Shown: piece after piece, positions 4,520-35,186 of the stretch
How positions within the stretch are numbered: the stretch's first letter is position 1
Layout of the letters: each line of letters begins with the position of its first letter
Assembly (NCBI GenBank): GCA_002269645.1
Contig: NIVC01000260.1
Coordinates: forward strand, 496,001 to 560,000
DNA: 64,000 bases
Source of the DNA: Macrostomum lignano
Taxonomy: Eukaryota
Reading direction: 5' to 3'
Notes under the pieces: model-generated
Database searches by the model: none
What the model saw: the letters and a program-made list of their open reading frames with translations, nothing else
Told to the model about the DNA's origin: nothing
Translations under genes and position numbers: made by a program

Positions 4520-5281
4520 CCTTTTCTTTCGTTGTAGACACGGTCAAAAAACTTTATAACCCAAAAATCCTCACAGTCATACAGACAACTTTCGTGAGGG
4601 TTTCTGGACTGTGCCATGCTCAGGATGAAATGTACGATAAATACCGGCCGGTACCCCCAATAGCACTCACTGTCTATGGCCAAGAAATCGGCCAAGAAGC
4701 GAGTCCTGAACCGACTTCATGGCCAAAAAAGTTTTTTTTGGGGGGGGGGCATGCAACATATATCTTGGCTAGCTACATGTACATGACTGTTTATTAAACC
4801 CACACCACGTGCTTGACAGTTGGCCTAGGGCTACATCTCTGTTATCTGTGCTGTATAAAGTTGGCGGTCCCAAGTTGCGGTTCTGCGACTACTAATCGAG
4901 ACACGACGTCAGGAAGCACTTTCGGATTCGTTTGAAAGCTTGTCATCAAAGCAAGCGCTTAGAGCCGCTTCTGGACCTGAAAAAAGCCATTTTTTTCAGT
5001 AAACACCTGAAAAATATAAAAGGGGGACCCAGCGAATTTTCGCCGAAATACAAAGGCACGCCTCCTCAGCTAGCAATTATCGATTTTAGAATCCGCCTCC
5101 TGAACAATTTTCCGGCTGCGCCACGACAGGGACTTCAAAGACACCAAAAGCTACCGCGCGTCAAACAATTTGAATCACGCCTAGATGTGTCTTTAACCAT
5201 TTGAAATCTTCGTGCGCACATGATTCAGGATAATTTTCTCTGGAATAATCTCTTCGAATTTTAGATGCAGGAATAACGAAT
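4520..5281 (+). repeat. Locally duplicated unit X, copy 1 (continues at 9812-9917 and 10236-10745 after LTR and SINE insertions)
   Basis: TCTGTG..TATAAA(G/A)TTGGCGGTCC...GAGACACG and TTTAGATGCAGGAATAA blocks recur at 19190-20480 and 21640-23000. TATAAA is at 4854. Confidence 0.8.
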
Positions 5282-5503
5282 TGTTATGTCTTCTTCTCCG
5301 ACGTGGAGCTGCTACATTTAAGTAAGAAGACAATGGTTCGCTTAAGCGGTTCGAGCTATCGTTTTGCTCCGGTTGATACAAACTCCTCTTGGGATTCATC
5401 TTGTAACTATTCGATACTTTATTATAAAATAATAGGTTGTGCCCTAGACAACAAAACATTGGGCTGGGGGCATACTTTGTGTCTTCTCTGCTAATATACA
5501 ACA
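5282..5503 (-). repeat. 3' LTR (222 bp)
   Basis: TGTTATG...TACAACA, same sequence as 9590-9811. Confidence 0.97.
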
Positions 5504-5514
5504 TTCCCCCTTTT
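5504..5514 (-). promoter_or_regulatory. Polypurine tract (AAAAGGGGGAA)
   Basis: Purine run on the minus strand abutting the 3' LTR. Confidence 0.9.
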
Positions 5515-5548
5515 GTCAATAAAAAGTTGCATTGTCAGTTATCCGGAA

Positions 5549-8500: not shown

Positions 8501-9589
8501 GAGATGATCTGTGTAACTTGACAGTCTAACATTAGATTTAGACCACCTTAAGCCAAGTTTCTTGCCAGTATTTTCGTTAATAAGGGTCTTGTCTGCGCCA
8601 GTATCCAGTTGGAAATTTACAAAATGCCCATTTATATTTAACTCGCACATATACGGTGCTGATCCACTAAAGCCAGCAATTCCTGTAGCAAACACAGTCC
8701 TGATCTCGGAATGCTTGTCTCGACCACTGCAGTCCGAACCCTCACTTTCTGACTCACTGTCAAAATTCCGTGCGTAATGCACCTTACCGGACTTCCCACG
8801 TTTTGAAGAGTTGAATCGCTTTGACCTGCCACTTCCAGACTCTTTTGCTTTGTCCTTTGTACGGCATGCATCTCTAAGATGTCCTACTCGGCCGCATTTG
8901 CTGCACGTTTTATTCCTATTTGGACAGCTCCTTGCCCAATGATCCTTCGCGTTACAGCGGAAACATCCATCTTGGGCGCGGCTCCTTTTCCCATGTTGCG
9001 CTGCAGTTGATTGCTTGTTAGTTTCCTTCGAGAAATTGACACTATGACCGACTCCTGTGGCGGAGGTGATAGTCACGACTCCTCGCTCTGCTGCTTCCAT
9101 CGCAGTCGCTAGCGTTAGTGCACCCGACAGGGTCAGTGTCTCTTCTTGTAGCAATCGCTGCTGGACGAGCCTGTTCCTGAGGCCAATGACGAACCTGTCT
9201 CTCAGTGCCTCCTCCAGGAACTTGTCAAAACCACACGTGGCTGCCAACCTCCGCAGACTTGCAACAAAGTCACTCACTGTTTCTCCTTCGTGTTGGACTC
9301 TGCTGTGGAAGTTGTACCGCCCGACGACAAGCTTCGGCTTTGGGTTGAAGTGTTCCCTCAACGTCTTCACTTGTTCGTCGTACGCCACATCCTTTGGCTT
9401 CTTAGGCGATAGCAGGTTGCGTAGCAATCGATATCAGTCATTACCAATCACTGTAATCAGATTTGCTCGCTTATGTGCCTCCTCGGTCACTTTGTTTACG
9501 ACGAGAAACTGCTCGAGTCGTTCTTCATAAGCTTCCCATTGCTCCGGTTTAGCCACGTCGAACTCTCCGATTTTTACACTCGTCGCCAT
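5549..9589 (-). pseudogene. Disrupted gag-pol polyprotein
   Basis: Starts MATSVKIGEF at 9589. In-frame TGA at 9434-9436. Zinc knuckles CFRCNAKDHWARSC and CSKCGRVGHLRDAC, protease LDTGA, RT YIDD, RNaseH TDAS...EKEALA...DH...NADALSR, integrase H-H-C-C plus LDY/SDNG/SER. Lesions: about 30-bp deletion near 7938 and 1-nt frameshifts near 7870 and 7421. Confidence 0.93.
9579..9588 (-). promoter_or_regulatory. Primer-binding site TGGCGACGAG (complementary to the 3' end of tRNA-Ser(GCU))
   Basis: Lies 1 nt inside the 5' LTR end. Metazoan tRNA-Ser(GCU) ends ...CTCGTCG-CCA. Confidence 0.8.
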
Positions 9590-9811
9590 TGTTATGTCTT
9601 CTTCTCCGACGTGGAGCTGCTACATTTAAGTAAGAAGACAATGGTTCGCTTAAGCGGTTCGAGCTATCGTTTTGCTCCGGTTGATACAAACTCCTCTTGG
9701 GATTCATCTTGTAACTATTCGATACTTTATTATAAAATAATAGGTTGTGCCCTAGACAACAAAACATTGGGCTGGGGGCATACTTTGTGTCTTCTCTGCT
9801 AATATACAACA
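9590..9811 (-). repeat. 5' LTR (222 bp)
   Basis: Matches 5282-5503 and is followed by TSD CGAAT. Confidence 0.97.
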
Positions 9812-13239: not shown

Positions 13240-13445
13240 ATCAAGGCTCTCGGGAGGAGAGCTTGGAAGCTGTTCAACTGGATGCTGCAATCGCGGTTGC
13301 AGCTCGTGCTGGATTCGAACCAGCGACCTGAGCAGATCGAGTTCCAGCCTCACCGCGGCACTTTGGCGCAGATCCTCGTGACACGGAAGCTGCTGGGTTA
13401 ACAGTGGGCGGCCAATCGGACTTCTCCAAGACATCCTCTAGCCGT
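13240..13445 (+). mobile_element. RTE/RTEX-like LINE RT fragment (paralog of 25745-25950)
   Basis: KLFNWMLQSRLQLVLDSNQRPEQIEFQPHRGTLAQILVTRKL resembles the LINE RT motif KL..R.L..RL......Q.GFR..R.T..QI. Confidence 0.75.
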
Positions 13446-13481
13446 CTCAATTTGTGAAATCAGACCAACTCTTGCCCATCT

Positions 13482-14057
13482 ATATCACCGTTTCTTCTTC
13501 TAGTGCTGCTACTGCTGCTTCCCTCGATGCTCTGCCTCGGCGTCGAGGATCAGCAGCAAGGCAGTGAGGATCAGCGCAAAGAGGCGTCAGGAGGCGACAT
13601 CGAGCTGAACGTCCTGGTCAGCGTGGACGGCAAGACGTCCTTCAACCTGACCAAGACTCTGAACAGCTACCTGTCTGAGAGCTTCGATCTCAATCCGGGT
13701 GAGTCGCTCCGACAAGCCGACGCCCGCACCAAACCAGGCTCCTTCGATTCACCCAACCGAGAAACCCGAGAAGCCGCTCGACAAGATCAAAGCCACGGAC
13801 GCCGAGTTCACGAAGAAGATGGAGCGCTGGATAAATGGCCCGGTGATTTGCTAGCCCCCGTGTTTTAACGGCAGGACCTGCACCAGGTTTCCAATGTTCG
13901 GTGAAAAAATGCGCAGGTGGCTAATTTTCATAACTTATTGGATTCTGATGCTGCCGCATGATTTCGAGGCTTATAAAAATGGTTATAAATTTCTTTCATT
14001 TTCCAGATTCCCAATCGAATACAAGGTCTGTGAAACGAAGTCCTTGACATCGTGTAA
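13482..14057 (+). pseudogene. Secreted EGF-ligand-like gene copy 1 (dead)
   Basis: Paralog of 26152-26823. ATG changed to ATA (13482), TATA promoter deleted, TAG at 13852, several EGF cysteines lost. Intron 13917-14006 conserved; AATAAA at 14126. Confidence 0.85.
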
Positions 14058-14659
14058 ACGTTAAACTTGACTTCTGAATAACTAAAAAAATATAAACTTA
14101 AAGTAGAAGAACAAACATCTCTATGAATAAAAAGTTCAGTTTCCCTCTCAAATTGTTAAACCACATTCAATCTAAAATAAACTACAAACAAAAATTAACC
14201 AAATCGATCAATTTTTTATTAGTTGAAACAACTGCATCTCCTCAAAAAACGAAACGAAAGGAGCTCTAAGCCACGCAATAAAGACAAAATCCCCTTTTTT
14301 GGACAGAGAATCTACATGTACGTACATACCGGAAGATATAAGGACAGGTGCCTCCCCCCCCCAAGGGCTGCCTTCTGCAATACAAAATCCTGAGTACATG
14401 TACGCCACTGCGGGTGCTGCACAGGTTCTGTCAACTCAACAGGTTCTGTTTGGTTCTGCTTTTTAGGTACGCAGGTTTTTAGGTACAAGTAACTCTTCTA
14501 CGAAACCATGCATTTACTTACTACTTCAAAGAGCAATGGCAGTACGGTGTGTTGTAGCATATGAAATTATTCTCGGGGCAGAACAGCAGTAGAGAACAAT
14601 TTACCTGGCCAGGCCAGGTAGTTTTTACCCGGCCATTAGTTTGCCATTCCAATCTTTGG

Positions 14660-15200
14660 AGTTATGAGCTCTGCCCTCCCTGCCCGGTCCATCCTGCTCT
14701 GTCCTTGGTCCATCTGCTGGCTCCTCTGGTTGTCTCCCTGCCTAAGTGTCTCTGGCTCTCATCCTGACAGTGGATTGGTGTCCTGGGGAATGAGTTCGTC
14801 CCGAATCGGGGATACCGGCTGAGTCCGGGTCCTTTTGCTCCTTGTGCCCCTTCCCGACCCCTTGGCCTGGCCTCCAATACTGAGCTGGATAGGCGATACC
14901 CTTGGGTTTGTAGCCGGTAGACGGTCTTCCTGCCTGGAGTCTCGCCCTCGGAAACAAGCCTTCCAGACTCGCTCCAATAGTTAAGCCATTTCCGTAGACT
15001 TCGGGGTTTCCCCGCTGTCGGACCGCTTTCAGTAGTAACCCAAGCTTTTTTTCGCTTTTTCCAATTTTTTCTGCGCACTCCAGAGGACTTGTCTGCTGGG
15101 TGGTGGCCTGGGTGGACTCGGTCCTAGAACCGTCCCTGATTCCACTTTTGGGTTGGCGGTGTCTTGTACCGTAGGTTTGGGCTAGTAGCACCAATACACC
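14660..15200 (-). mobile_element. Possible degenerate RTE-like LINE C-terminal remnant
   Basis: GC-rich segment absent from the paralogous block downstream of EGF copy 2. Weak motifs across frames (LLKAVRQR, VLEARPRGR, KDRAGW). Confidence 0.3.
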
Positions 15201-15419
15201 ATGTTCTCACCAGAGTCCTGAGCTCTGGTCCCAATCGTGGCCTCTCGGGCTACATGCCCCTAGCAGTATGGCCCAGTCAGATCCCTGCGGTAGAGCCCCC
15301 TTTCGGGCTGATCCGCGGCAAGCCCCTCCCTGGCTTTCCACCCCCGTTTAAGAAGAAGAAGAGAACATGCATAGATTTGGGGCTTGCTTTGGATGTTTTA
15401 ACCCCCGGATGTTTGAGAA

Positions 15420-15570
15420 GAAAAACTTTCAATTTTTTTACAGCGTTTTATAGCCAAGATGCCCCAATACTGTATTCAGCCCACCAGCAGATTGGACACA
15501 TGGCAGAAGCCACTCTGCTACGCTGTCTACCCAGTAAACTCCGCATCCCCTTATCGGGTTTCCAGAAACA
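15420..15570 (+). repeat. Duplicated block Y, copy 1 (paralog 29895-30045)
   Basis: CAATTTTT.TACAGCG and CTCTGCTACGCTGTCTACCCAG...TTATCGGGTTTCCAGA are shared between the two copies. Confidence 0.8.
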
Positions 15571-16164
15571 ACCCCCGCCGAGATTGTCTGAATTGCTGGC
15601 CTGCCTGGCTTGTTCGCGATTCAAATAGCCTAGGGGGAAGGTAAGCTCGGTAGCCTCCGTTCCTGCAAGACTCAGCGACACGGGAGCTGTCGGATCCATT
15701 ATCCAACGGTGCAGCGGAGACACCTTTCAAGAATTCGGGGCTAACAGACCGTCACGAGCACAGCATTGCATTGACTGACGAGTCCCGGTGCGAATTCTGC
15801 CAAAGGAGCTGCCGTTGCACTGGGAGGCGGAAGTGAAGAAGCTGATCCAAGAGCTATTAGACAATGACAGCCCGAATGTGGCGCCCCCCCCCCCAGTGTA
15901 CGTGCGGAAAAAGAATGGACCACGCTGTATAAGTTTCTAGTCGGTGGATAACTAAGAACTTACATATCATTAATAGTACATAACCCTCTCAGCCTTTGCT
16001 GATGCTGATCATCATCCTTGTTGTGTAGTGACAAAAAACTACAATTCAGTAGGTCAGTACATATGTAGATGTATTGAAAATATTATTGACTTGACGTATT
16101 TTTTACATTTCTACTGGCAGTAGAGTATGAAATAATTTTCAGTATAATTTATGCTAACGGAGAT

Positions 16165-17225
16165 GCCATCGCCTTGTGCGAGGACTTCCAGTTCTTCGGA
16201 TCGCTAGCAACGAGTCTGAACTCCAATCGTCTCCGACAGGAGGAACCAGAACTGGCGCGCGGCGCACCTGCTCAGGAACGTCTTCAACTCAGCTGCGAGG
16301 GACGGCCTGAAGGTGCGCCTCTTCCACGGTGACATGGAGCCGATCCTCCTGTACGGCATGGAAGCGGTGCCGACGAATGACACACGAGAGCGAGCCCTGG
16401 ACGCGCACTACCCCGAGAGGTTGCCGTCCAGAGACTCGCGATGGACCACGCCGGCATTCCAGACCCTGAGCGTCACTTTGGACCGGCGCCGCCGCCGGAT
16501 GCTGCCGGGCCCATGTAGTGAGCGAGAGACAAGCCAGTCAGTCAGGTTAAGTCCAGAAAACCAATTAACCCTCACACGAAGGGTGGAGTAACTTTAATAT
16601 TTAATCGAGAACGCATGTACATATACAATCTGAGTGCTTGTACATCGCATTCCCTTACCACCAATCACTAACTAGCAGAACGAACCAGTGAGTAAATTCA
16701 CTAACAACATTCACCCTCCTCCTTAACAGTCACTAATTGCCCTCACAGCTGACAATCAGTGCGTCACGACCTGGCCGTACCACAACGGCGGTGCCCGCAG
16801 TCGCGTACTGCGCCGCAGCTCCGCGTCGGCCTCAGCGGTCGCCGGCGGCGGGTCCGTCGGGCCTTCTGGCGCTGTCGGCTCTGCAGCCACTGGCGGCTGT
16901 GGCGGCATTGCCGTTGCCGAAGTCGTGCTTGCACCCTCGGGCTCCGCATGAGGCATACAGACGCTGGTGTGCCACCTCGAGCCGTCGTCTAACATGACGA
17001 TAGTCGGGCTAATGATGTCGCTCACCCGTAGAGGTGATGACACGTGGCTCTGCAGCTTGCCTCGCATCCGTGGAGATCGCACTCGCACCAGGTCAATCAG
17101 AGTGCGCATGTACATCGCATTCCCTTACCCCCAATCACTAACTAGCAGAACGAACCAGCTAGTAAACTCACTTCACAACAGGCCACTGCCTCGGGAGTCC
17201 CGTTGGCACTAATCTTCTTGCATCA
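16165..17225 (+). mobile_element. RTEX-like LINE C-terminal fragment split by an LTR derivative
   Basis: LCEDFQFFGS, LKVRLFHGDMEPILLYGMEAV...ERALDAHY, RRRML|GHCL; the last motif is joined across the 16514-17180 insertion. Confidence 0.65.
16514..17180 (-). mobile_element. Internally deleted Gypsy LTR element (667 bp)
   Basis: TG...CA LTR at 16514-16709, PPT at 16710-16727, integrase tail VRVRSP...PLRV...LDDGSRWH...LRRSTR, and a partial second LTR at 17099-17180 matching 16630-16709. Degenerate TSD GCCCA/GGCCA. Confidence 0.8.
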
Positions 17226-18129
17226 GCCGACGGAGCGGAAGAACTGTGACTCCAACTGACTGTTTTGTGGCTGACTTGCAGGCGCTAGGTCTCAGCACCC
17301 AGACCGCAGCTGCCGGCCCCTCCGCCTGTTTCGCGAACGCGTAAGCGCAAGAGCTCAGTAGTTTTTGTGTGTGTCTATCTATCAATCTATGCTGCAGCTA
17401 CGAGCGTACGCAGTGGCCAGCAGATCTCACTGGCTATGATTGTGAAGAGTTTAAGAGTGGTTATCAGTCACTCAAAAACTCCCACTTCTAGACACTGGGG
17501 AAAAAGTGCCTAGGTACATGTATAAGCAAAATCAAATAACTCTTACTCGAGCGGCTCCTTTAGTAGCTTGCAAACGTCTTGTCTTGAAGAGTGTAGCGGG
17601 CTTTGCTGTACTGTAGTGAAAACTGGCTTCTGTGGATCCTTCACTTTATCTGTGGGTCGACCAAAACGAGAGCGAATCAGAATTTCTTGACGATCCTCGA
17701 GCTCGGAATTAACAATAAAACGTGCGCTCCAATGAACAATTGAATTCTCTAGGTTTCTGTAATAGGTCCTCCTGAAGAGCGTCTTCTTCGTTACGTCCGA
17801 AACGTAACGGATAACTCAAATCAATCAATAAATCCTCTAGGAATGTATCCTAGGAAACAAGGAGGCCTTTTTTAAATGTGTCGACAGTAAACTGCTCTCG
17901 TAAACTTAATTAATCAATTTATTAATGCTAGCAACAAAGAACTAAGGCTGGTAAACGCTTACCAATTGGACAAGTGTAGTCCCTCAGAGATTGGTCTCCT
18001 TTTCTTCTTCTTTGTTTCTCGCGGAGTCTACAAGATGGTGTCTACATCTCGCTCTCTATGTAGATTGACGTCAACAAATATATCGATCACTGCTCCGTGA
18101 GGCCTTCGCGTTTTGATTTCTTTTGATCA

Positions 18130-18330
18130 CCCAAGCATCTCCTGTTACACAGGACCATCACAGCTGCTAAAGCACGTTGTACGGGTGCGAAGGATGTTCT
18201 GGATGACTCGCATGGAAACCGAATCGAAAGCCTTCTGGATGTCCATGAAGACGCAGATGACAGGCGACAGACGCAGAGGCGGTCCTCTTCTAAGATGCTG
18301 TGTGCAGCGCGATGTCTGTAGTCAAAACCA
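18130..18330 (-). mobile_element. LINE RT fragment
   Basis: Minus-strand ILEED...PVICVFMDIQKAFDSVSMRVIQNIL carries the D..KAFDSV motif. Confidence 0.75.
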
Positions 18331-18699
18331 TATGGTCTATGGCAAAGTGAGACTCTTTTTAACCAAAGTGTCCCTAAGCAAAATCCTCATGGCAACTCAC
18401 TTGCGTCCAACCAAGCAACCAGAATTATTGTCACGAGTGCCGTAGTGAAAAACAGATGGAGCCCTGCATGGTTCAAACGGTGGATGAAGGCACCGCAATA
18501 GCTTTGGCTGCCAGAAACTTAAGAATGAATAAAAAGGCAGGGTACAGAACAAGTATAGTGAGACTGGCCACATGCATACACTGCCTCAGGCTGGCTCGTG
18601 CAAGGTGGACGCTGAGACGTAACAGCCAATCGGCCATATTGTGGAGCAAAATCAGTACGTCATTCTCAAGGATGCGCAAGGAAGCCTGACAGAGCTGCA

Positions 18700-19000
18700 T
18701 CATAATTATTAAATAATAAAAATTGATTACACCTGCTCTAATGGGCAGATGTGCAACCGACAGCTCAGCCGCAGCTATTGTGCGGCGCATCTGAAGGCTG
18801 CGTACGGCTGTTCACTGGGGGTCGCCGCACACACCCTCAATTACCTCAGCTAATGTTGGCACCCATTTTACAGCTGGTTGAACTGACGCAATACAAAGTT
18901 AAGTGTCTTGCTTAAGGACACAAGTTGTTCTAAGTGGGTCGGGAATCGAACCCCGACCTTTCAGTCGCGAGTCCGACGATCTATAGTAGGCTACAACCCC
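18700..19000 (-). mobile_element. tRNA-derived SINE, copy B
   Basis: Reverse complement of copy A, with canonical B box GGTTCGATTCC. Confidence 0.85.
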
Positions 19001-19189
19001 CCCCCCTCAAAGCCGGTCATCTCTGAGCACGGACGTTGAGCTCCATGCGAAATACGCTTAGAACTACGAGCTATAATTACATTTTGGATCAGGCTGCTAA
19101 ACCTTACAGAGTTTTGCATGTGACACTTTGCTTGCTTATGTCTAGGGTGATTTCAGTTGGATTCTTCTCAATCGACCTCGTGACCAAAG

Positions 19190-20480
19190 AAGTGGTATTA
19201 CATGTACATGTAGCATCCATCTTGGTTGAGTGTTTATAGAACTCACACACGTTTTTTGGCAGTTTGGCTAAATCTCTGTTTATCTGTGTGCTTTATAAAA
19301 TTGGCGGTCCCAGGTGCAATTCTGCAACTGCTATTGGAGACACGATGTCAGTTCATTTTCCATTTTGCAAGCTTTTGTACTCAACAGCACCTGTCTATCT
19401 TCTGGCTTTGTTTGAAAGCAAACACTCGCAGGCACTTGTGCAGGGGCGCAACCAGGTGCGAGGGAAGCGGCTGCATCTGAAAAAATGATAGGGAAGATCA
19501 AGCGCATTTTCGCCAACATACAGGCCGCCTCCTCCGCCCCCATCCCTTTGGGCTTTAGGTCTTCAACCCCCTGCTGCACTAAGAACTTAAAAGACGTCAA
19601 AAGTCACGTCGTCACAGTAGAACTACCAATGAGGGGGGGGGTGGTAATTTCCCCCTGGCATTTGCTCTGTTGCGTCGGAACGAGGCAACGCAGGCACACG
19701 AAATTCAAGAACACAGGCAGATTTTTTGTTGCGCACCTTCTCAAACAAGAATCAAGTCGCCAGCCCTCCGGACCATCGAGATATTCAACGATTCTGCCAG
19801 AAGGTCGGATTTTCCCATAAGCGCCTGTGTATTCAGTACACCCCTGTGCGCCAATCAGCACTGCGCCTCAGCACTGCCTTGCCAAGCCTCCAAATTTCGT
19901 CAGCACGTCGACCACATGTGTCTGCGTCAGCTCTGACTTTGTTGGTCATTGACTTTCACCCAGGCGAAGCTTCTGGACCCTCAACAGGTGGCACCAGGTG
20001 ACTATGGACGGGCAGAAGAATGGCGTAGTATTCTTACTGTTATTTTTAAACTTCACGAACGCCTTGATTAAATATGTTTTTTTCTCTAGCATGTCTGTTT
20101 TTTTTTCTGGGAAACTCGAAGTTTCGAATTTTAGATGCGAATTTCGTTTATCATGTGTGATTTGTAAACTTATTTCCCCATAAGGATCTGATTCCGAATG
20201 GATCACCGTACTGTGAGAGCTACTCGTACATGAAGTCATGGATTTTTAAATCCTAACTATGTGTAAGATACTGACCTACTTTCTCACTCAACATCTCCAA
20301 GAAAAATCCCGTAGCATCGCTCGCTTCCAGGGATTCCAAATTCCGAAAGCGCAAGAGCAGAGGAGAGCGGAAGCCGCATCATCTGCCGCCTCTGAGGACC
20401 CGACATCCGACAAAGAAGCGGACTCCACGCGTCAGCCGGATGCGTCGGTGCCGCAAAAGCTTCTGGCGCGGCTGGCTCTT
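19190..20480 (+). repeat. Duplicated unit X, copy 2
   Basis: TATAAA at 19294. Colinear with 4780-5281 + 9812-10745 after removing the insertions. Confidence 0.75.
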
Positions 20481-21218
20481 TCCGGGGCGAGACCTCTGCT
20501 CGTGAGAAAACACGCACGGCTGCGGAGAGATCCAAAGCGGGGGGCGCTGGCCAAACACTAAGCCGATGCCTGAAGACGAGCGTCGAGGACCAGGCCTTCC
20601 ACATCCAGCCCGACGACAGCCGGTCTGGGCAGCAGCTCCTCAAGATGGGTCAAGCGATCACGGACACACTGAAACCGTGCATGGATTCCGGTTCGCTGCG
20701 GAGACGGGCGGAGACGGTTTCACGGCTATCCTCGGTCTGTTGGATAGCTGGATGCTCCGCTTTCCGGACATGTCCCTTGTCTTCGAATCTTCATTTTCGA
20801 ATTCGACATCACCTGTCCACCGCCCCGGAGAATTGTAAGCACAAACAGGAAAAAGAGGCTCCTGTGCTTCATGACCCGTCACGTGGACCCCGTCTAGGGG
20901 AAAGCCGCGAAAGCTGCAGCAACAGGCGGACGTTGGAAGGGCCCGGAACACTACCCGATACTAGCCGGCAGGGAATCGCTGGACATCATGCTCACCAGCT
21001 CTTTCCCACGTGCAGCACCGCAGCTAGGCCCACCAGATCACTCTCCGGGGGGACAGATCCTGGCTTCGACCATCATCACCAGAGAGAAGACCATCATCGC
21101 CGCGAGATCCTTCTCTCCTTTTAACCCTAATCCTAGCGATTTACAATCGAATGAACCAAGTTGCAGAAAAAAATTGACCAATGCATTACAAACAAATAGA
21201 CAGACTAGCAATATTAGA

Positions 21219-21430
21219 CTAGCAATCCTCCCCGTTTGGGGAGCCCAAAAATGAAAATGAAACTATGACTGAAAATATTATAGAATGTACCCACGCTTCC
21301 AGTAAGCCTAGACATCCCAGCAATTCCCCCCGTAAGCCTTGACGTCTCAGAAATTCCCCCAGTAAGCCTTGACATCCTACTTTTAAGGGACTACCGGTGT
21401 TTAATGATGAGATCCCCAGAGTTGCTATGG
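21219..21430 (-). mobile_element. 3' end of a non-autonomous Helitron-like element
   Basis: Hairpin CTCCCC-GTTT-GGGGAG (21228-21243), then CTAG|T on the minus strand, and GATGTCAAGGCTTAC subrepeats. Same family as 53655-54724. Confidence 0.6.
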
Positions 21431-21639
21431 CTACATATGTACAACTGGGATTTTCTGTCATTAAACAGCGACAGCCAGATGTACCTTATTGTTTAATTGT
21501 TAGAGAAAATAGGTCAACGGATCCAAGTGGGCTAGTCTTTACCAAAATAGTACGACTTCTTTCACCCTCTTTCGTATGAAGTTGGACTATGCTCGACAGG
21601 AAGAGCCATGCTTTACTGCTAAAGCTGTTAGTCTATGGT

Positions 21640-23000
21640 CTATGGTTAACCTGGCTAAAAATCCTCACGGCCATAGACAACTTTGTGGGTTTACAGCTGT
21701 GCCATGTCTAAGAATAAGTGTAAGTCAAAGAATACTGAGCTAATATTAGCTCAGTATTCTTTGGTGTAAGTAAGATATGCTATAGTTTTGAGGTCAGTAT
21801 GAGTTTCAATCCGGAAAGCCGAAGGGCTAATTGGAATACCGATCTCAAAACTATGACATAGCCATTTTAAAACGACTTTCATTTCCGGGAATAACTCCCG
21901 GAATCCATTTTAACTTTCTTTTACTGGACGTGAAAAGACGGGGGTGTGAGGAGGAGCCTCACATTTAGCCATAGACAATTAAGTATTTAATTGACAAGAT
22001 GGAAACGACAAGAGACCATAGATATAGTATAGATTCATATTGTTCAGTCTCTCTCTTCCTCTCCTTCAGTTCAACTCGGCTTTAACCCGTGACTGATCTT
22101 CAAGCAAATTCTAAGCTATTTGGCAAAGAAAAATGAAAGATATTCGCATTTTAAACCCACTAATTGACTTCATTGGGGACTTTGCTGGGGACTTATGATC
22201 CTAATTGACTTTCAGCAGATGTGGAAGAAAGAAGGACTAGATCAGCGTGACCCGAATGTTGAGCAAAAACTTCGAGAAATCCGCTGAAACTTGAATTTCA
22301 AAGACTGCAGTGTAACGATCAATAACTAACAATATCGACAACAAGCAAAGGAGTACACATGCTGACTATATTTTCCCGTAAATGTTTTTAATTTCTGTTT
22401 GGTTGTACTACTGTTGTTGCCTATGGTCGGTTCTGTTCAGTATGCCTAAGAACTCTTGCAAAATGTTTCCATATATTTGTTTCACTTTATACATGTAGCT
22501 TCATACGTCTTGGTTCTTGGCTATAGCTGAGCTTTTTTAAAACCCATACACGTCTTTTGATAGTTAGCCGTGGTTAAATCTCTGTGCTGTATAAAATTGG
22601 CGGTCCCATGTGCGTCTCTGCAGCTGCTAATTGAGACACGGTACCCGTTAATTTTCATTTTTCAGGATTTGTATACGCAACGGCAGCTAGATCTATCTAT
22701 CTTACAATTGCAGGCACCAGGGGCTTCAAAGACATCAAGTCACTCGCTAGAACCAGGCCTACATGTAGATGTCTCTAATCATTTTAAATCTTTATGCGCA
22801 CCTGATTCAGGACAATTTTCTCTGGCAAAATTACATCGAACTTTAGATGCAGGAATAAGGAATAGATTAAGAAAGAAATTCTACATGCCTGTGCTTATCA
22901 TTTGTGATTTTTAAAGAATCTTTCAACTGCCAGGATTCCGGACGGGTCACCATACTGTGAGAGCTTACATTGAGTCGACCACGGGATTCGTACATCCCGA
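21640..23000 (+). repeat. Duplicated unit X, copy 3
   Basis: AAAATCCTCAC..GTGCCATG block at 21657, TATAAA at 22590, TTTAGATGCAGGAATAA at 22842. Confidence 0.75.
21726..21763. mobile_element. 38-bp perfect palindrome with 8-bp target-site duplication (minimal P/hAT-type element)
   Basis: CAAAGAATACTGAGCTAAT|ATTAGCTCAGTATTCTTTG, flanked by GTGTAAGT at 21718-21725 and 21764-21771. Confidence 0.8.
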
Positions 23001-23134
23001 CCACCATGGCTAACAGCCCAATGCGTCAATGTCGATATACTTTTGTAGCTTTTGTTCGCATGCACGGTGTTCTTAAGTAGCCCTTGGGCTTAATACTGTT
23101 ATTCCCAACTTTATTTTTTCCTTAACCTAGAAAC

Positions 23135-23390
23135 GCACACTTTCGCACTCCTGACACACTTTTGCACCCCTGACACACTTTTGCACCCCTGACACACACT
23201 TTTGCACTACTGACACAGTTTAAGACCCCTGACACACACTTTTGCACTACTGACAAACAGTTTGTCACTCCTGACTCATTTAGGCATCAATGACACACAA
23301 TTTTGCACCCCTGACACACAGCCTGGCATTCCTGACACACAGTTTCGCACTCCTGACACACATTTTCATATTCCTTTGATACCACTGACG
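23135..23390. repeat. Degenerate 20-22-bp tandem repeat (TTTTGCAC.CCTGACACAC)
   Basis: About 11 diverged units with a CCTGACAC core. Confidence 0.85.
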
Positions 23391-25309
23391 CACACGTTCA
23401 ATCTGACTACCTTTCAGGTTTCCTAATTTCTGTATTTCTGCACTGAGCCACAGCTTTACCCCCAGAGCCGCTTTTGGGTCGGAACAGTGAACTGCCGCAA
23501 TCTCAAGTAAGGGGGGGGGGAGAGTGCGAAGCTAGACCTCGACCTAAGCTGTAAAGTCACCCTGCTGCAGAAGATGTGTACAGTCAGTGTATCAAGGCTT
23601 GAACTTCTCGTGAGGACCTGTGCGCCCTCTCTAAGGCACCTCAGCCGACCAACGAGGCCGTGGGTTGGAGCGCTGTTTGGACCGAGGCTGCAGCAGAGCT
23701 GTCGCTGCATCTCTCTGTCCCCCTGGATACTTCAAGTCGACGTCCCGCTTACGCTAACGTTCCCCCTGTCACCGCCCTGATGAGGCTCAAGTTTTCTTTG
23801 AACATCTCTCGGTGCAGGTGGAGGCACCGGTGCAGCGTGACGCTGTGATCGGCCTCAGAGACCTTGACGCGCTTCTGCGGATTGACATTAAATAGGCGCG
23901 CATTCTCAGCACCAATACGAGCATCGTAGGTCATGATAATAAAAAGGCATAAAATTCATAGATTTCATGGATTTCAGACTCATGGAGCAATTGCTGGGAT
24001 CATGAGAGTCATGGTTCACGGGGGCCGGTTGATGAAACGCTGTGGCTCATGGGGGGAGTTGATGAGATGTCACGGCTCACGGGGGAATCGTTGAAATGCT
24101 GTGTCTCTGCCCGAACCACTTTCGAGTTGCAAAAGGAGTCAATATTCCATTTGACAAAACCTCGTATTGAGACTTGCGGTTATTTTCGGCCACCCAGATA
24201 TGCTGTGGCATTTGCGGCCGAGTGTCACATGGCATTTAAGCATAAAATTTAAAACGGTGCCTCTCGAATCTGTCTACCAAGTGCTGACTATTGACTTTGT
24301 GGAGCTTTACTGCTTTGGCTTGCGCTGTTCGTTCTCATGACACGGAAAACATTTGAAAGATTGTGAGATGGACCTGAATCTGGCTCAAACGCGGAAGTCG
24401 TTGGGTGCTGCATGGTTCCACTACGCTCGTACTTCAAGGTTAACAAATTTTGAATTTTTGAGGCGACGCAAAAGCTGGACTTGCATCAGGTGAATGCGTT
24501 TCGTGTTTCTGATGTTAGTGAGCTATGCGCCCTCAAACCTGGTCCAGCCGCTCGATCTGGCTCCAAACAGGGCGCCGCCGTCTCTTACTTTCCATCTGAT
24601 GCAGCCTGCTTCAGTTCCTACAGACGTGCAAACAGTCACCCAAGCAAGCAGCAGCTCAGCCAGTGTTTTGGACTTCAGTGCGCCGACTCCGGTGACTGCC
24701 GTCAAGGGAGTGCAGACTGGCTGTGCTGGGCCTGCACTTCACTTCCGATAACCAGAAGCTTCTATGACGTACGAGGGTAGCATGGCCACCTCTAGGGAAA
24801 AATCCGCAGCTAGGAATGCCCATTTGGCCTCTCCGTTGTTCAGAATGCGGAGCACTGCATCTGTGATTTCCCGCCTTTACTCAGGACAGGCTCGCCTACT
24901 TCGGCCCAAACCCGGACCTTACCGACGTTATCAGGCCTGAGAATATCTGCCAGCTCCTGCCAGCTTAACCGAATTGTCTCTGATTCTTACGACACGACAA
25001 ACACGTTTTAACATTTGACAACAAAAAATAACAATAATAAATACATGCATGTGAGCTTGTCTTTGCTGTGGCACTTATGTCTACATGTAGAGAATATGGC
25101 TGTTCGTAAGATTGGCAACTCTGAAACGCTGGATTACTTTCCTGAGAAGGCAAGACATGGGCGTCGGCCAACACTCGCTTCTGTAAGCCACCGAGCTGAC
25201 TCGCAACCTGTGAGGACTGCAAGCGGAGGCGGCAAAACGCGCGCGGCCAGAACGAAACGCTGAATTAGACAGCTCGATCAGTTAGTTTTCGTCAACTACC
25301 GCACCATCA

Positions 25310-25950
25310 CTAGTATCGCACCAATACAAGGAAGCTCTGGTGGCTGTCTGTCTGCAGCGCCAGAAGGCTGCTGTTGACGACGCCATTCAAGTCTCGCTGC
25401 CGATGGGCCTCGTGCTAGAGGGCGCAGGGCCTGGTCTGCCATCAATGCTCTGACGGGGCAGAAGCCGCGCATCCCGTTGAACTTGGCAGACGATTCTGTG
25501 GACGAGCGCAGGAATGAGCTGCGTGAGTTTTTTGCCGCCATCGTGAACTCGCCGTCACTCTTAACGCTGCAGGCGGAGGAGGAGAGTCTCGCCTAACAGT
25601 CGTCGTGGAAGAGGTGTCCATTGTGAAATTCGTATCCACTGTGTGGCCAGTGGGGTCGCCAGACTGATGAACGTCGCACCCAACAAATGGACCACGACCC
25701 GTATCGTCCCTTTTTTAAGAAGCCGGGCACCACAAGGCTTGAAGAGCATCAAGGCATGTGCCTTCAGTTCTGCGCTAGGAAGCTGTTCGACTGGATGCTG
25801 CAATCGCGGTTGCAGCCCGTGCTGGATTCGAACCAGCGACCTGAGCAGATCGAGTTCCAGTCCCATTGCGGCACACTGGCGACACGGAAGCTGCTGTGTC
25901 AACACTGGGCGGCCAATCCGACTTCTTCAAGACATCCTCAAGCCGTCTCT
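25310..25950 (+). mobile_element. RTEX-like LINE fragment (pre-RT and early RT)
   Basis: RAWSAINALTGQKPRIPLNL...ERRNELREFFAAIVN and KLFDWMLQSRLQPVLDSNQRPEQIEFQ. Confidence 0.75.
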
Positions 25951-26029
25951 CCTCATTCGTTCGATGTTTTCGATTAGTCTCCCATCGTCCCTCAAGAGAC
26001 GCCACCCAATTAACGCATAGCGCCATGTC

Positions 26030-26035
26030 TATAAA
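26030..26035 (+). promoter_or_regulatory. TATA box of EGF-ligand-like copy 2
   Basis: GCGCCATGTCTATAAATTCG is conserved upstream of copy 3 (TATAAA at 30804). Confidence 0.6.
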
Positions 26036-26151
26036 TTCGTACCAGATTGAGCAGCAGGATTATTCAGTGATTGCTTGGCAAAATCGTTGTTACATTCGGA
26101 ACCATACAATATTGGCTCAATTCGTGAAAGCAGACCAACTCTTGCCCATCT

Positions 26152-26823
26152 ATGTCACCGTTTTTTCTTCTAGTTCTGCTGCTGCTGCTTCCCTCGATGC
26201 TCTGCCTCGGCGTCGAGGACAAGAAGCATCAGGAGCAGCACGGCAGTGAGGATCAGCGCAAAGAGGCGTCAGGAGGCGACGGGGAGCTGAGCGTCCTGAT
26301 CAGCTTTAGCGGCAATTCGTTCTTTAACCTGATCAAGACTCTGAGCAGCTACCTGTCTGGGACCTTCAGGGTCGTCGGCGCCTCCATCTCTATCCGGGTG
26401 AGTCACTTGGGCAAGTCGATAGCGACGGCCCCGACCGGCTCCGACAAGACGACGCCCGCACCGAACCCGACTCCATCGCTTCACCCAACCGAGAAACCCG
26501 AAAAGCCGCTCGACAAGATCAAAGCGGAAGACGTGAAGGCAGCCAAAGCCAGGGACGCCGAGTTCAAGAAGACGATGGAGCGCTGGATAAATGGCCCGGT
26601 GATTTGCAAGCCACCGTGTTTTAACGGCGGCAACTGAACCAGGTTTCTCGTGTTCGGTGAAAATACGTGCAGGTAGCAAATTTTTCATAGTTTCTTGGAT
26701 TCTGATTCTGCTGGATGATTTTAAAGCTTAAAAAGTAGTTATTAAACTCTTTGACTTTTCAGATGCCCAAACGGATACAAGGGCCTGCGATGCGAAGTCC
26801 TTGACATTAAGCGACATCCCTGA
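26152..26823 (+). pseudogene. Secreted EGFR-ligand-like protein, copy 2 (intact except TGA at EGF Cys3)
   Basis: Signal peptide MSPFFLLVLLLLLPSMLCLG. Exon 1 is 26152-26672, intron 26673-26762, exon 2 26763-26823. EGF reads ICKPPCFNGGN*TRFLVFGENTCR|CPNGYKGLRCE, with * = TGA at 26635. No TM segment; AATAAA at 26984. Confidence 0.88.
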
Positions 26824-27369
26824 CGTTGAAGTGAAACGACGTCCTTGGCGCTGACGTTAAACGTCGATGCGAAGTCCTTGGCATCATATAAACGTTAAAC
26901 TAAGCTGACCATCAAGCTTCAATCAATTCTCAATAATTTAACAAAAATGTAACCTTTAAAGTAGACGAACGAACATCTCTATGAATAAACAGTTTGTTTT
27001 TTCCTCTCAAAGTGTAAAACAACATTCAATCTAAGATAAACTAAGAACAAAAATTAACCCAATCTATCAATCTATCAACGCAGCATTCCAAAAGCATAAA
27101 TACGTGTTTTTCTACGGTGTTATTCATTTTTCAAGATAATTTTGACCAGTTGAAAAACTGCGTCCTCAAAGAAACGAAAAGAAAGGAGCTCTAAGCAGCA
27201 CATTAAATGTTCAACATCTCCGTTTTAGACAGTCATCTGCATGTACCTACCGACAGATAAGGACAGGAGCGTCCCCCTAGACATCAAATTATTGGCCCCC
27301 TAAGGGCTTCCTCCTGCAATAAAAAATTCTAAGTAAATGTACGCCACTGCGGGTGCTGTACAGGTTCTT

Positions 27370-28200
27370 GTAGTACATGTAGTACATCAAGCCCTCTTTG
27401 ACTACGCGGTTCAGGCGCCCCACACCAGAGTTGCCTTGAGGGTGGTAGAACGAAGTCTGACGATTATTGATGCCGTACGCCTTTAGTCTCCAAGCAAGTC
27501 GATCTGCAACTCTGTCCACGGTTCCTTCGGTCATTTGGTCGGAGTCAGCACTGTCCGATGCGTCTTAAAGCTCTTGTCACTGATGATGCACGCAGAGCAG
27601 CCGCTGAAGCGAACCTCTCGATGTCGCTGTCTATTTTGGACCACCACACGGTGTCTCCGCAGTGGTGCTTGGTCCTGCTAACTCCCTTAATTGTGACCTT
27701 GATGCGCTAAGGTCGAGCTTTCGCTGACGCAGCTCTGGTATATGACGGCGGCGAGTTCCGATGGCCAAGCACCTGCCGTTTCTCGAGACAGTCAGCTCGT
27801 TTCTGACACTCCAGTTGGGCATCCGGCGCTCATCGAGTTTTTCCTTGTCCGGCCAACCGGCAACTTTGAACTCTGTGACTTTTGCCAGGAGCTGGTCCTT
27901 TGAGGTTGCCTCAGGCAGTTCCTCCTCGGTAACCACAATCAGATCAGCGCCTCGATCAGGAGCACTCTCTGGACCTCCAGATCGTCCCTTGCATCCCCTT
28001 CCGTGACGATCTGCAGTCCCAGCTGTTCCATGAGGTCACATCCCAGAATGTCAGATCCGGTCTTGACCACGCTGATGTTGACGTAAGGCACTACCTTGGC
28101 CTTGAGCTGCACCGAGGTCAGGATGTCACCAAGCACGAAGATCTTGCTACCATTGATGATCAGCTTCCGTAACGATGTCTGCAGAGGCACGTTAGACAGA
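27370..28200 (-). mobile_element. Heavily deleted Gypsy remnant (protease tail, pre-integrase, integrase core)
   Basis: VLGDILTSV...VVKTGSDILGCDL; EELPEATSKDQLLAKV...GWP...VRNELTV; GINNRQTSFYHPQGNSGVGRLNRVVKE. Confidence 0.8.
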
Positions 28201-28460
28201 ATTTCATACGTCTTTGTATGATGGAGACTCGCGAACCGGAGACAACGAGCAGCAGACTTTGCAGTGCTTGCTTTCTTTTGTTGTTCACATTTTTTTATGA
28301 GGACAAACTTTCAGCGCTGGTTTTTTACGTAGCTAGAAGTAACTCTCCTTCAAATTCTGCCATATTTACTACTAAAAGCATTAGTAGTATACTGGATAGC
28401 ATATGACATTATTTTTGGGAGGCAGAGCAGCGTACCGGAAAACCACCCGCTGGGTTTTTT

Positions 28461-29770
28461 CCCACTGGATGTTCACCCACCGGATGTTTACCTGCCGGAT
28501 GCTTCTACGCCGGATGCTTCCCTGCCTGATGCTTCCCCACCTGATGCTTCCCCACCTGATGTTCACCTGCCGGATGCTTCTACGCCGGATGCTTCCCTGC
28601 CTGATGCTTCCCCACCTGATGCTTCCCCACCTGATGCTTCCCCACCTGATGCTTCCCCGCCTGATGCTTCCCCGCCTGATGCTTCCCCACCTGATGCTTC
28701 CCCGCCTGATGCTTCCCCGCCTGATGCTTCCCCACCTGATGCTTCCCCACCTGATGCTTCCCCACCTGATGCTTCCCTGTCTGATGCTTCCCCACCTGAT
28801 GCTTCCCCACCTGATGCTTCCCCACCTGATGCTTCCCTGTCTGATGCTTCCCCACCTGATGCTTCACCACCTGATGATTCCCCGCCTGATGCTTCCCCAC
28901 CTGATGCTTCCCCACCTGATGCTTCCCCACCTGATGCTTCCCCACCTGATGCTTCCCCACCTGATGCTTCCCCACCTGATGCTTCCCTGTCTGATGCTTC
29001 CCCACCTGATGCTTCCCCACCTGATGCTTCCCCACCTGATGCTTCCCCACCTGATGCTTCCCCACCTGATGCTTCCCCACCTGATGCTTCCCCACCTGAT
29101 GCTTCCCCACCTGATGCTTCCCCACCTGATGCTTCCCTGTCTGATGCTTCCCCACCTGATGCTTCCCCACCTGATGCTTCCCCACCTGATGCTTCCCCAC
29201 CTGATGCTTCCCCGCCGGATGCTCCCCACCTGATGCTTCCCCACCTGATGCTTCCCCGCCTGATGCTTCCCCACCTGATGCTTCCCTGCCTGATGCTTCC
29301 CCACCTGATGCTTCCCCACCTGATGCTTCCCCACCTGATGCTTCCCCACCTGATGCTTCCCCACCTGATGCTTCCCCACCTGATGCTTCCCCACCTGATG
29401 CTTCCCTGTCTGATGCTTCCCCACCTGATGCTTCCCCACCTGATGCTTCCCCACCTGATGCTTCCCTGTCTGATGCTTCCCCACCTGATGCTTCCCCGCC
29501 GGATGCTCCCCACCTGATGCTTCCCCACCTGATGATTCCCCGCCTGATGCTTCCCCACCTGATGCTTCCCCACCTGATGCTTCCCCACCTGATGCTTCCC
29601 CACCTGATGCTTCCCCACCTGATGCTTCCCTGCCTGATGCTTCCCCGCCTGATGCTTCCCTGCCTGATGCTTCCCTGCCTGATGCTTCCCCACCTGATGC
29701 TTCCCCACCTGATGCTTCCCTGCCTGATGCTTCCCTGCCGGATGCTTACCCGCCTGATGCTTCCCCGCCG
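28461..29770. repeat. 15-bp minisatellite (CCTGATGCTTCCCCA) x about 87
   Basis: Long tandem array with recurring variants (CCCTGT, CCCCGC) and diverged edge units. Confidence 0.97.
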
Positions 29771-29894
29771 CAGACACTCAGGATGTGTGCCCACCGGTAG
29801 TTTACCCGTCGAATGCTTGCCCGTAGCAAAACAGAAATGTATTTTATCTTAGGTTAGTCTTCCTGCTGGCAACCGCGGACTTAGGAAGAGGCAA

Positions 29895-30045
29895 ACCTTC
29901 AATTTTTCTACAGCGTCTTATGGTTAAGATTTCCCAATGCATAATTCAACCCGGACATGGTAAAAGGCAGACATGGTAAAAAGCGCTCTGCTACGCTGTC
30001 TACCCAGAAAATTCCGCATCGCCTTATCGGGTTTCCAGACTCTGT
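29895..30045 (+). repeat. Duplicated block Y, copy 2
   Basis: Homologous to 15420-15570. Confidence 0.8.
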
Positions 30046-30434
30046 CTTCGCTATTCAAAATGCCTGTGAAAAGGTCAAATCGATCCCATCCCAGCCAGTA
30101 GCCAATTCTGCAAAACCACATTGACTACTTAAGCACAGCTAGCAACTTTTAGGGCTCACAGTGATCTGAGCAGAAAATTAATCAATCTGTGCAATATTCC
30201 TCTTCGCGGAAAAGAGAAACATACAATTTCACTAAAATTCGCGTTGATCCAACATATTTTACAAGAATCGATATTACTTTTGCAAGAATAAATACTCTAA
30301 TAAAACTAATAATTTTATTAATTAAAAGCAATTAATTTCTTGATTTCAGATTCATTCATTGATTCAAAATGCCATCGCCAATAATCAACCGTCTCTGTCT
30401 AATTTACAGTACCCTGTCACGTTTGCCCGAGTCG

Positions 30435-30520
30435 GCCGACCTCCCAGATCCTGATTTGTTGGGCCAGCCTCCCAGATCCTCATTTGTTGGGCCAGCCTCC
30501 CAGATCCTCAGTTGCTGGGC
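30435..30520 (-). repeat. About 3 units of the 28-bp repeat, inverted relative to 34240-34886
   Basis: CTCCCAGATCCTCAGTTGCTGGGCC is the reverse complement of the 34-kb array unit. Confidence 0.85.
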
Positions 30521-30878
30521 CTCAAAGTGCCTGGACTTGAATTTTAAGTCTTCTTTGATATTTCAGTTGAGACTTATATTTTCTTAGGCAATCATGAATT
30601 AAAATCAGTGCGTCCCGACTCCTTGGTTCCAGCTACGGAAGAGAACCTGTCTTCAGCAAATGTAGGTAGGAATACTCGGCAGAGTCGAAGAGGGTGCTGG
30701 TGATAGCGACAACCGCACTACATTGGTCCTTCGTCATTCGTTTGAACCGAATTACATATCGTCTCGGGAGAGGCGCCAGTAAATGCGCGCAGAGCGCCAT
30801 GTCTATAAATTCGCGTCAGTTCGAGAAGCAAGATTGATCAGGTATTGTTTCTGAGAGCAGACCAACTCTTGTCCATCT

Positions 30879-31370
30879 ATGTCACCATCGCTTCACCGCT
30901 AGTGCTGCTTCTTCCCTCGATGCTCTGCCTTCAGGCGTCGGGAAGCTTCGTGGAGCTGAGCGTCCTGATCAGCGTGCCGAGTCTCAATCTGAACAAGACT
31001 CTGCTGCGCATCCTGCCTGCTGCCCGGCTTGAGAACTTCAGGAAGTTCGACTTCGTCACCATCTCCACCCGGTCGAGTTCCTTGGATAAATCAAACTCAG
31101 CTGCACCGATTCCTTCTAGCCATGCTGAGCAGATGGCGACCATTTCTCTGACGCCCGATAACAGTTGCAACACGGATGTTGTGAGGTGTCTGAACGGTGG
31201 TACCTGTTGCATATCTCTTATCAGGCATCGTCCACTGTGCAGGTAACACTTGCTAATTACTAATTCGTCTCTGATTGAGCTGATGTCCAAGTTCTGGAAA
31301 TTCGTTATCAATTTCTTTCATTTTTCAGATACCCAGAGCCATACGTGGGCTTTTTTGCGAGTTAGACTCT
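30879..31370 (+). pseudogene. Secreted EGF-ligand-like gene copy 3 (more diverged, frameshifted)
   Basis: TATA at 30804. ATG at 30879 goes out of frame within the signal peptide. EGF reads SCNTDVVRCLNGGTCCISLIRHRPLCR| intron 31243-31328 |YPEPYVGF, with Cys5 changed to Tyr and a frameshift before Cys6. Confidence 0.8.
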
Positions 31371-34239: not shown

Positions 34240-34886
34240 GCAGGCTGGCCCATCAACTGAGGATCTGGGAAGCTGGCCCAGCAACTGAGAATCTGGGAAG
34301 CTGGCCCAGCAACTGAGAATCTGGGAGGCTGGCCCAGCAACTGAGGATGTGGGAAGCTGGCCCAGCAACTGAGGATCTGGGAGGCTGGCCCAGCAACTGA
34401 GGATCTGGGAAGCTGGCCCAGCAACTGAGGATCTGGAAGGCTGGCCCAGCAACTGAGGATCTGGGAGGCTGGCCCAGCAACTGAGGATCTGGGAAGCTGG
34501 CCCAGCAGCTGAGGATCTGGGAGGCTGGCCCAGCAGCTGAGGATCTGGGAGGCTGGCCCAGCAGCTGAGGATCTGGGAGGCTGGCCCAGCAGCTGAGGAT
34601 CTGGGAGGCTGGCCCAGCAACTGGGATCTAAGGGCTGGCCCAGCAACTGAGCTGGGAGGCTGGCCCAGCAGCTGAGGATCTGGGAGGCTGACCCAGCAAC
34701 TGAGAATCTGGGAAGCTGGCCCAGCAGCTGAGGATCTGGGAGGCTGGCCCAGCAGCTGAGGATCTGGGAGGCTGGCCCAGCAGCTGAGGATCTGGGAGGC
34801 TGGCCCAGCAACTGGGGATCTAAGAGGCTGGCCCAGCAACTGAGAATCTGGGAAGCTGGCCCAGCAGCTGAGGATCTGGGAGGCTG
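34240..34886. repeat. 28-bp minisatellite (GGCTGGCCCAGCAACTGAGGATCTGGGA) x about 23
   Basis: Tandem array with a few truncated units. Confidence 0.95.
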
Positions 34887-35186
34887 GCGGTTGATGGAAA
34901 CGCTTAAAAATTAGACTTGCGAATAAAACAGTAGGACACCTGAAAAACCACATTGCCAAGCTAATAAACAGAGCCTGTGACAAGAAAGCTGTGCGATAAT
35001 TTAAAAAATTCTCTACCAACTACAGGTGAAATCATCTAGGCTAAGTGTAGGAATGACTCCGTTTACAATATTGACAACCGATGTTGAAATTGGAGTGAGC
35101 ATTTTCAATCGATCGTTTAATCAATCAAAGGTGTCACAATTCACAAGACCAAACAGCAAACTAGAATCGGGCAGTTCCGCACTGGC

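Follow-up and report, generated by a model that had tools for sequence, protein, structure and literature searches.

A tandem cluster of three decayed two-exon genes for probable secreted single-EGF proteins in Macrostomum lignano

In a 64,000-nucleotide stretch of the Macrostomum lignano genome (GenBank assembly GCA_002269645.1, contig NIVC01000260.1, positions 496,001 to 560,000 of the forward strand; hereafter the window, with positions counted from its first letter) we find three paralogous genes in tandem, all on the plus strand: copy 1 at 13261-14429, copy 2 at 25774-27368 and copy 3 at 30758-31370. They share a two-exon plan, which comprises a signal peptide, a linker rich in K, A, P and T, and a single C-terminal EGF module that is split by the intron. 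Because every copy carries lesions, none of the three is able to make an intact six-cysteine EGF. The sequenced locus is for this reason a cluster of pseudogenes, in which a single nonsense codon keeps copy 2 from being intact. The explanation that we consider probable is that these are the genes of a taxon-restricted family which encoded secreted single-EGF proteins and have now become pseudogenes, with binding of the proteins to an EGFR-type receptor as a possibility. The cluster is most likely what is left here of a dying, lineage-restricted family of soluble EGF-like proteins.

Gene plan, lesions and evolutionary signal

The features of the three copies are as follows (nt, nucleotides; a slash marks an exon boundary).

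Copy 1
13261-13445, plus strand: upstream homology block of the duplicated unit, 91% identical to 25774-25949
13482-13916, plus strand: exon 1 remnant of the pseudogene, 89% nucleotide identity to copy 2 exon 1
13518-13537, plus strand: signal-peptide 20-mer, exact identity with the other copies
13917-14006, plus strand: intron of 90 nt, GT..AG, 79% identity to the copy 2 intron
14007-14064, plus strand: exon 2 remnant with Cys5>Phe and a 1-nt deletion; AATAAA follows at 14126
Copy 2
26019-26039, plus strand: core promoter with TATAAAT at 26030; 21 of 21 nt shared with 30793-30813
26152-26672, plus strand: exon 1 coding sequence from the ATG at 26152, with signal peptide MSPFFLLVLLLLLPSMLCLG, N-terminal region, K/A/P/T-rich linker and EGF Cys1-Cys4
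26188-26207, plus strand: signal-peptide 20-mer, exact identity
26635-26637, plus strand: in-frame TGA in place of the Cys3 codon (TGC in copy 1, TGT in copy 3)
26673-26762, plus strand: intron of 90 nt, GTAGCA...TTTTCAG, donor TGCAG/GTAGCA, acceptor TTTTCAG/A
26763-26823, plus strand: exon 2 coding sequence with Cys5, Cys6, GLRC, a 10-residue tail and the stop
26787-26885, plus strand: tandemly duplicated segment of about 79 nt in which the last codons recur, with CGATGCGAAGTCCTTG(A/G)CAT present twice
26984-26989, plus strand: polyadenylation signal AATAAA, conserved with that of copy 1 at 14126
Copy 3
30793-30813, plus strand: core promoter with TATA box, 21 of 21 nt shared with 26019-26039
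30879-31242, plus strand: exon 1 remnant with Cys1-Cys4 (CNTDVVRCLNGGTCCISLIRHRPLC) in the old frame
30911-30930, plus strand: signal-peptide 20-mer, exact identity
31243-31328, plus strand: intron of 86 nt, GTAACA...TTTTCAG, at the homologous position
31329-31365, plus strand: exon 2 remnant with Cys5>Tyr and a T-run frameshift that removes Cys6

An initial annotation, made from the letters alone, had described three paralogs with a signal peptide, a low-complexity linker, one C-terminal EGF and no transmembrane (TM) segment, and this plan is borne out by self-BLAST, MAFFT alignment, tblastn and hydropathy. The EGF is the only recognisable domain of the encoded protein; on the Kyte-Doolittle scale, 19-residue windows exceed 1.6 nowhere but in the N-terminal signal peptide, and in copy 2 only 10 residues follow Cys6 before the stop. 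When spliced, copy 2 gives a product of 193 codons, in which a short region common to the copies (ELSVLIS..NL.KTL) lies between the signal peptide and the linker. Its EGF reads ICKPPCFNGGN, the TGA stop in place of the third of six cysteine codons, then TRFLVFGENTCR up to the splice junction and CPNGYKGLRCEVLDIKRHP after it, followed by the stop. Once the TGA codon is repaired, the domain taken by itself reaches 22.7 bits against the Pfam EGF model PF00008, for which the cut-off is 21.5 bits. The introns are of the GT..AG type, 86-90 nt long, and in all three copies interrupt the homologous site after the second base of the codon that follows Cys4. The same annotation had given this junction as TGC AG/A in each copy: the position between Cys4 and Cys5 stands for all three, and the literal motif for copies 2 and 3 only, copy 1 having CGC AG/A. 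Another potential donor inside exon 1 of copy 2 (GGTGAGT at 26398) was rejected on the sequence itself, as its phase 0 is incompatible with the phase-2 acceptor at 26763.

Copies 1 and 2 are alignable across about 1.6 kb, whereas copy 3 shares only about 63% nucleotide and 29% amino acid identity with copy 2, and is a much older paralog, not merely a more decayed copy. The signal-peptide 20-mer CTTCCCTCGATGCTCTGCCT has exactly three occurrences in the window, where 0.01 would be expected, with 20 of 20 nt the same in all copies, and the 21-mer around the TATA box has two matches (copies 2 and 3) against 0.00 expected; both are identical even though copy 3 is only about 63% identical overall. 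A fourth copy was not found within the 64-kb window by self-BLAST, MAFFT alignment, tblastn or a six-frame scan for the cysteine pattern. The cluster sits in DNA that is rich in transposable elements and minisatellites, which could raise the suspicion of chance open reading frames (ORFs) or a repeat borne by such an element. That explanation is scarcely credible, given that an in-frame EGF is restored across a canonical intron in three copies, that conservation extends to the promoter, the signal peptide and the poly(A) signal, and that there are just three copies in one orientation with no hallmarks of a transposable element.

Each copy shows nonsense, frameshift, start-loss or cysteine-loss changes, and the introns are retained, so that the copies are unprocessed pseudogenes. 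Copy 1 had been reported to lack its start codon, promoter and cysteines, and does so: exon 1 has ATG>ATA at 13482, a 17-nt frameshifting deletion, a TAG after Cys1 and Cys4>Arg, of which the deletion and the TAG, like the 1-nt deletion in exon 2, come on top of the reported losses. The 166 nt that would match 25950-26115, including the TATA box, are absent from it, and with this promoter block missing the upstream block directly abuts the 5' untranslated region (UTR). The frameshifts noted earlier in copy 3 are likewise present and are accompanied by Cys5>Tyr: through a 4-nt deletion the ATG no longer reads in frame and meets a TAG eight codons on, the old frame being otherwise open for 133 codons, and the T-run frameshift lies in exon 2. 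What did not hold is that copy 3 represents just a later stage of decay, as it is the much older paralog mentioned above. A tandem, lineage-restricted family of three copies with graded inactivation is supported.

The single lesion that had been ascribed to copy 2 is the TGA at 26635-26637, which is its only disabling change and lies one C>A change away from the TGC of copy 1. Given that the TATA box, ATG, signal peptide, splice sites, frame, stop and AATAAA of copy 2 are all intact, the gene could conceivably be live and the family active, with the TGA explained as a mistake of the assembly, as a null allele that segregates or by read-through of the codon. We regard this as improbable: substitution errors are rare in finished assemblies, most of the changes along the copy 2 lineage are non-synonymous and their number is about that on the lineage of the dead copy 1, the Thr before Cys3 is lost, and no product of the locus occurs in the protein collections searched (5.8 billion and 1.84 billion sequences). 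The C-terminus is also remodelled, with the duplication of about 79 nt giving EVLDIKRHP before the stop instead of the inferred ancestral EVLDIV. The TGA falls exactly at a cysteine codon position, as would a selenocysteine replacing Cys3. The paralogs use Cys there and no SECIS element was detected, either in a search of the entire window at gathering thresholds or in one of 26600-28300 at E<=10, and with these two results the selenocysteine reading is effectively refuted.

Identity between copies 1 and 2 is 91% in the upstream block, 94% in the 5'UTR, 89% in exon 1, 79% in the intron, 78% in exon 2, 79.5% in the 3'UTR and 79% in the downstream flank. It thus makes a step from 89-94% up to the end of exon 1 (26116-26672 versus 13446-13916) to about 79% after it (26673-27368 versus 13917-14429). 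The two copies mismatch at 11% of positions in exon 1 and at 21% across intron, 3'UTR and flank (Fisher p = 5e-5), and of the four indels in exon 1 three have a length divisible by three. These features are compatible with purifying selection after the duplication or with a 5' gene-conversion tract, and the exon 1 pattern can be taken as some trace of past function. The ratio of non-synonymous to synonymous change (dN/dS), a check proposed along with the initial annotation, is 0.73 for the coding sequences of copies 1 and 2 (bootstrap 0.40-1.53; dS 0.15, dN 0.11), an interval that includes 1; hence there is no clear constraint between them. Polarising the changes with copy 3 places 12 on the copy 2 lineage versus 14 on the dead copy 1 lineage. 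With the dN/dS value and the polarised changes there is therefore no sign of recent constraint on copy 2, and constraint in the family appears to be weak or absent.

The EGF module and the EGFR-ligand question

The cluster had initially been interpreted as a lineage-specific expansion of EGFR ligands, the position of the intron being viewed as a hallmark of such ligands. Stein and Staros (2006) indeed described ErbB ligands as having both a splice site that falls between Cys4 and Cys5 and an EGF module adjoining a TM domain, and noted a conserved Arg before Cys6 (PMC1618406). The paper on C. elegans SISS-1 calls the Cys4/Cys5 intron 'near-invariant' (PMC11686035). The hallmark is therefore a published one, and the introns of all three copies lie at this site. 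However, the same splice site is also found in mucins, meprins and IMPG2 (PMC1618406), and the marker is accordingly not exclusive to ligands.

The second of the two features given by Stein and Staros is absent here, as the stop follows 10 codons after Cys6 where a ligand precursor would continue into its TM domain. In ligands the six cysteines follow the consensus CX7CX4-5CX10-13CXCX5GXRC. Copy 2 reads C-x3-C-x5-(TGA)-x10-C-x-C-x5-GLRC, so that its remaining spacings (C2-C3, C3-C4 and C4-C5) and the Gly-x-Arg-Cys at Cys6 agree with the consensus, whereas the third cysteine is a stop and the first loop is short, with 3 residues between Cys1 and Cys2 (6 in copy 3) versus 7. Copy 3 is without Cys5 and Cys6.

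Sequence similarity also points away from the ligands. In phmmer searches of the PDB with the EGF module, the best single-module match was the growth-factor module of tPA (34.9 bits, about 49% identity over 35 residues), followed by factor IX (27.5 bits). The ligands came lower, with an EGF/TGF-alpha chimera at 25.2, EGF at 24.9, epiregulin at 22.9 and TGF-alpha at 20.8 bits, roughly 10 bits under tPA and level with single Notch1 and EDIL3 modules (21-22 bits). The module is thus not nearer to known ligands than to non-ligand EGF modules in the PDB, and the refuting condition set in the initial annotation, a grouping of the EGF with structural repeats, goes against the ligand reading. Unrepaired copy 3 matched only tPA. 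When the copy 3 EGF was repaired by hand before searching the PDB, neuregulin and TGF-alpha ranked high; this result was not used, as the 'RCE' in the query was invented and biased the outcome.

A further resemblance to structural modules is the O-fucose-type sequon C2-X4-(S/T)-C3 within a CxNGGxC core, seen as CFNGRTC in copy 1 and CLNGGTC in copy 3; in copy 2 it has become CFNGGN(TGA), with the Thr lost by an ACC>AAC change on copy 2's own lineage. The hEGF-type modules of tPA, uPA, factor IX and Notch, which include the best matches, share the CxNGGTC motif and the C2-X4-T-C3 sequon with copies 1 and 3. In vertebrates such modules are single exons bounded by phase-1 introns and lie within mosaic proteins. 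Unlike them, the module described here is internally split and is the sole domain of a small secreted protein.

Several features are shared with the ErbB/EGFR ligands proper (EGF, TGF-alpha, epiregulin, neuregulins, Spitz, Vein and LIN-3). These too have one EGF per precursor, placed after a signal peptide and a pro-region, and a splice site at the like position between Cys4 and Cys5; with copy 2 they share the C2-x5-C3, C3-x10-C4, C4-x-C5 and x5-G-x-R-C6 spacings and a hydrophobic residue five positions past Cys6. They differ in having juxtamembrane, TM and cytoplasmic parts, which this family is without, and the similarity to them (18.6-25 bits) remains below that to the tPA and factor IX modules. 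Missing TM segments are nonetheless known among ligands and candidate ligands: Lymnaea L-EGF and planarian Smed-egf-6/-7 consist, as here, of a signal peptide and a single EGF with no membrane anchor, and belong to lineage-specific expansions. A sequence relationship between them and this family was not detected in the protein searches (5.8 billion and 1.84 billion sequences), and receptor activity has been shown for L-EGF, whereas all copies here are disabled.

We therefore have, on the one side, the splice site in three of three copies, the Gly-x-Arg-Cys, the 10-residue Cys3-Cys4 loop and the single terminal EGF, which suggest an EGFR-ligand identity. On the other side, two defining features (the TM domain and the length of the Cys1-Cys2 loop) and the PDB matches contradict it, and the O-fucose-type sequon of copies 1 and 3 also speaks against it. 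That the genes were true EGFR/ErbB ligands, expanded in this lineage as soluble forms with the ancestral ligand intron, is accordingly unlikely in our estimate, and binding to an EGFR-type receptor is no more than possible. As a caution, an EGFR ligand is not identifiable by the position of an intron alone.

A fast-evolving family of secreted EGF-like proteins

Outside the EGF module the family is an orphan. The reconstructed copy 2 protein had no relative among 5.8 billion proteins, and the exon 1 ORF had no true relative among 1.84 billion representatives, two matches being repeat artefacts in which a stretch of 21-27 residues was matched many times. Scans of metagenome contigs by protein pattern and by exact DNA pattern returned nothing.

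From the gene plan, the intact genes would have encoded a secreted protein of about 190 residues, with the signal peptide followed by a short N-terminal region, the K/A/P/T-rich linker and the C-terminal EGF. The signal peptide would direct it into the secretory pathway as a soluble precursor. Since the EGF module lies at the extreme C-terminus of this soluble precursor, its release would be independent of cleavage by a sheddase (ADAM) or a rhomboid protease. The EGF module would then mediate its action outside the cell, be it that of a soluble EGF-like ligand or of some other fast-evolving extracellular effector.

A conserved signal peptide joined to a divergent mature region is a pattern typical of toxin and antimicrobial-peptide families. 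This cluster, in which signal peptide and promoter are strongly conserved while the mature region has diverged, dN/dS is near 1 and the genes turn over in tandem, fits a fast-evolving secreted-peptide family; its product could have been a soluble EGF-like ligand specific to the lineage or else an effector like the EGF-like venom peptides of ants and sea anemones. The latter, such as ant MIITX2-Mg1a and the gigantoxin-type peptides of sea anemones, are also directly secreted EGF peptides with no TM segment, and form recently expanded families with conserved signal peptides.

A fast-evolving effector with an EGF scaffold that served in venom, defence, immunity or reproduction, and not in endogenous growth-factor signalling, would account for a 5' end that is identical at 20 of 20 nt in three copies while the mature region is down to 29% amino acid identity, for the dN/dS near 1, for the birth-and-death turnover of the tandem array and for the TM-less precursor. 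We hold it to be quite unlikely all the same: about 130 residues, namely a long pro-region and linker, precede the EGF here, unlike the signal-peptide-plus-mature-peptide precursors of venoms, the ant toxin is matched at only 19.9 bits, and gene conversion is equally able to explain the conserved 5' end.

The broader explanation, that of a decayed taxon-restricted family of secreted single-EGF proteins with its mode of action left general, has points that weigh against it as well. The 89-94% identity on the 5' side versus about 79% elsewhere could stem from 5' gene conversion and not from past selection; the assignment of the EGF depends on the repair of one codon; and the evidence for the cluster comes from the genomic sequence of this one 64-kb window. 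In its present state the locus illustrates, cleanly and on a small scale, how a gene family for secreted peptides turns over by birth and death.

A bolder proposal is that of an anchor-less family of secreted EGF ligands or effectors which combines a tPA/Notch-like, O-fucosylatable EGF with the ancestral intron of ErbB ligands, and of which intact members exist elsewhere or copy 2 is alive in other haplotypes. We think this distinctly unlikely. If true, soluble EGFR agonists would have arisen by a separate route, and the 'ligand' class of EGF modules would be linked to the 'structural' one. Should intact relatives exist and signal via an EGFR, they would add a lineage-specific, shedding-independent class of EGF ligands. 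They would further show that the Cys4/Cys5 intron can go with an hEGF-like sequence, which bears on the reliability of the ligand marker.

The surrounding window

The window has a GC content of about 37-55% and is dense in minisatellites, with more than a dozen arrays. A 15-bp minisatellite of 86 copies occupies 28476-29766, between copies 2 and 3; a 28-bp unit lies just upstream of copy 3 (30440-30521), and the same unit returns, inverted, in a 23-copy array 4 kb downstream (34242-34888). No tRNA and no Rfam family was found in the window. The upstream block at 25774-25949 and 13261-13448 resembled a short interspersed element, which could not be shown; it accompanies copies 1 and 2 alone and matches no tRNA, and for these reasons is treated as part of the duplicated unit.

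The Pfam scan of the surrounding ORFs returned retroelement domains only. A young Ty3/gypsy long terminal repeat (LTR) retrotransposon lies on the minus strand at 5280-9811, with 224-bp LTRs (5280-5503 and 9588-9811) that are 100% identical and nearly intact ORFs for gag-protease, reverse transcriptase and RNaseH-integrase. The relatives of its pol region are only about 50% identical and are spread over ticks, fishes and a sponge. A fragment of a non-LTR retrotransposon reverse transcriptase is found at 2899-3336 on the minus strand (Pfam RVT_1, E = 5e-15). Past copy 2, short minus-strand ORFs at 27289-28190 resemble, by eye, integrase and aspartic-protease fragments of retroelements; Pfam gave nothing significant for them.

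Long ORFs also lie on the minus strand within 38796-51446, at 38796-40346, 40431-41264, 43198-43974 and 47226-51446. The last of these encodes 1406 residues and had no relative among 5.8 billion proteins. They are mostly coding tandem repeats with units of 33, 39 and 54 nt, contain no Pfam domain, and may be exons of one large repetitive gene.

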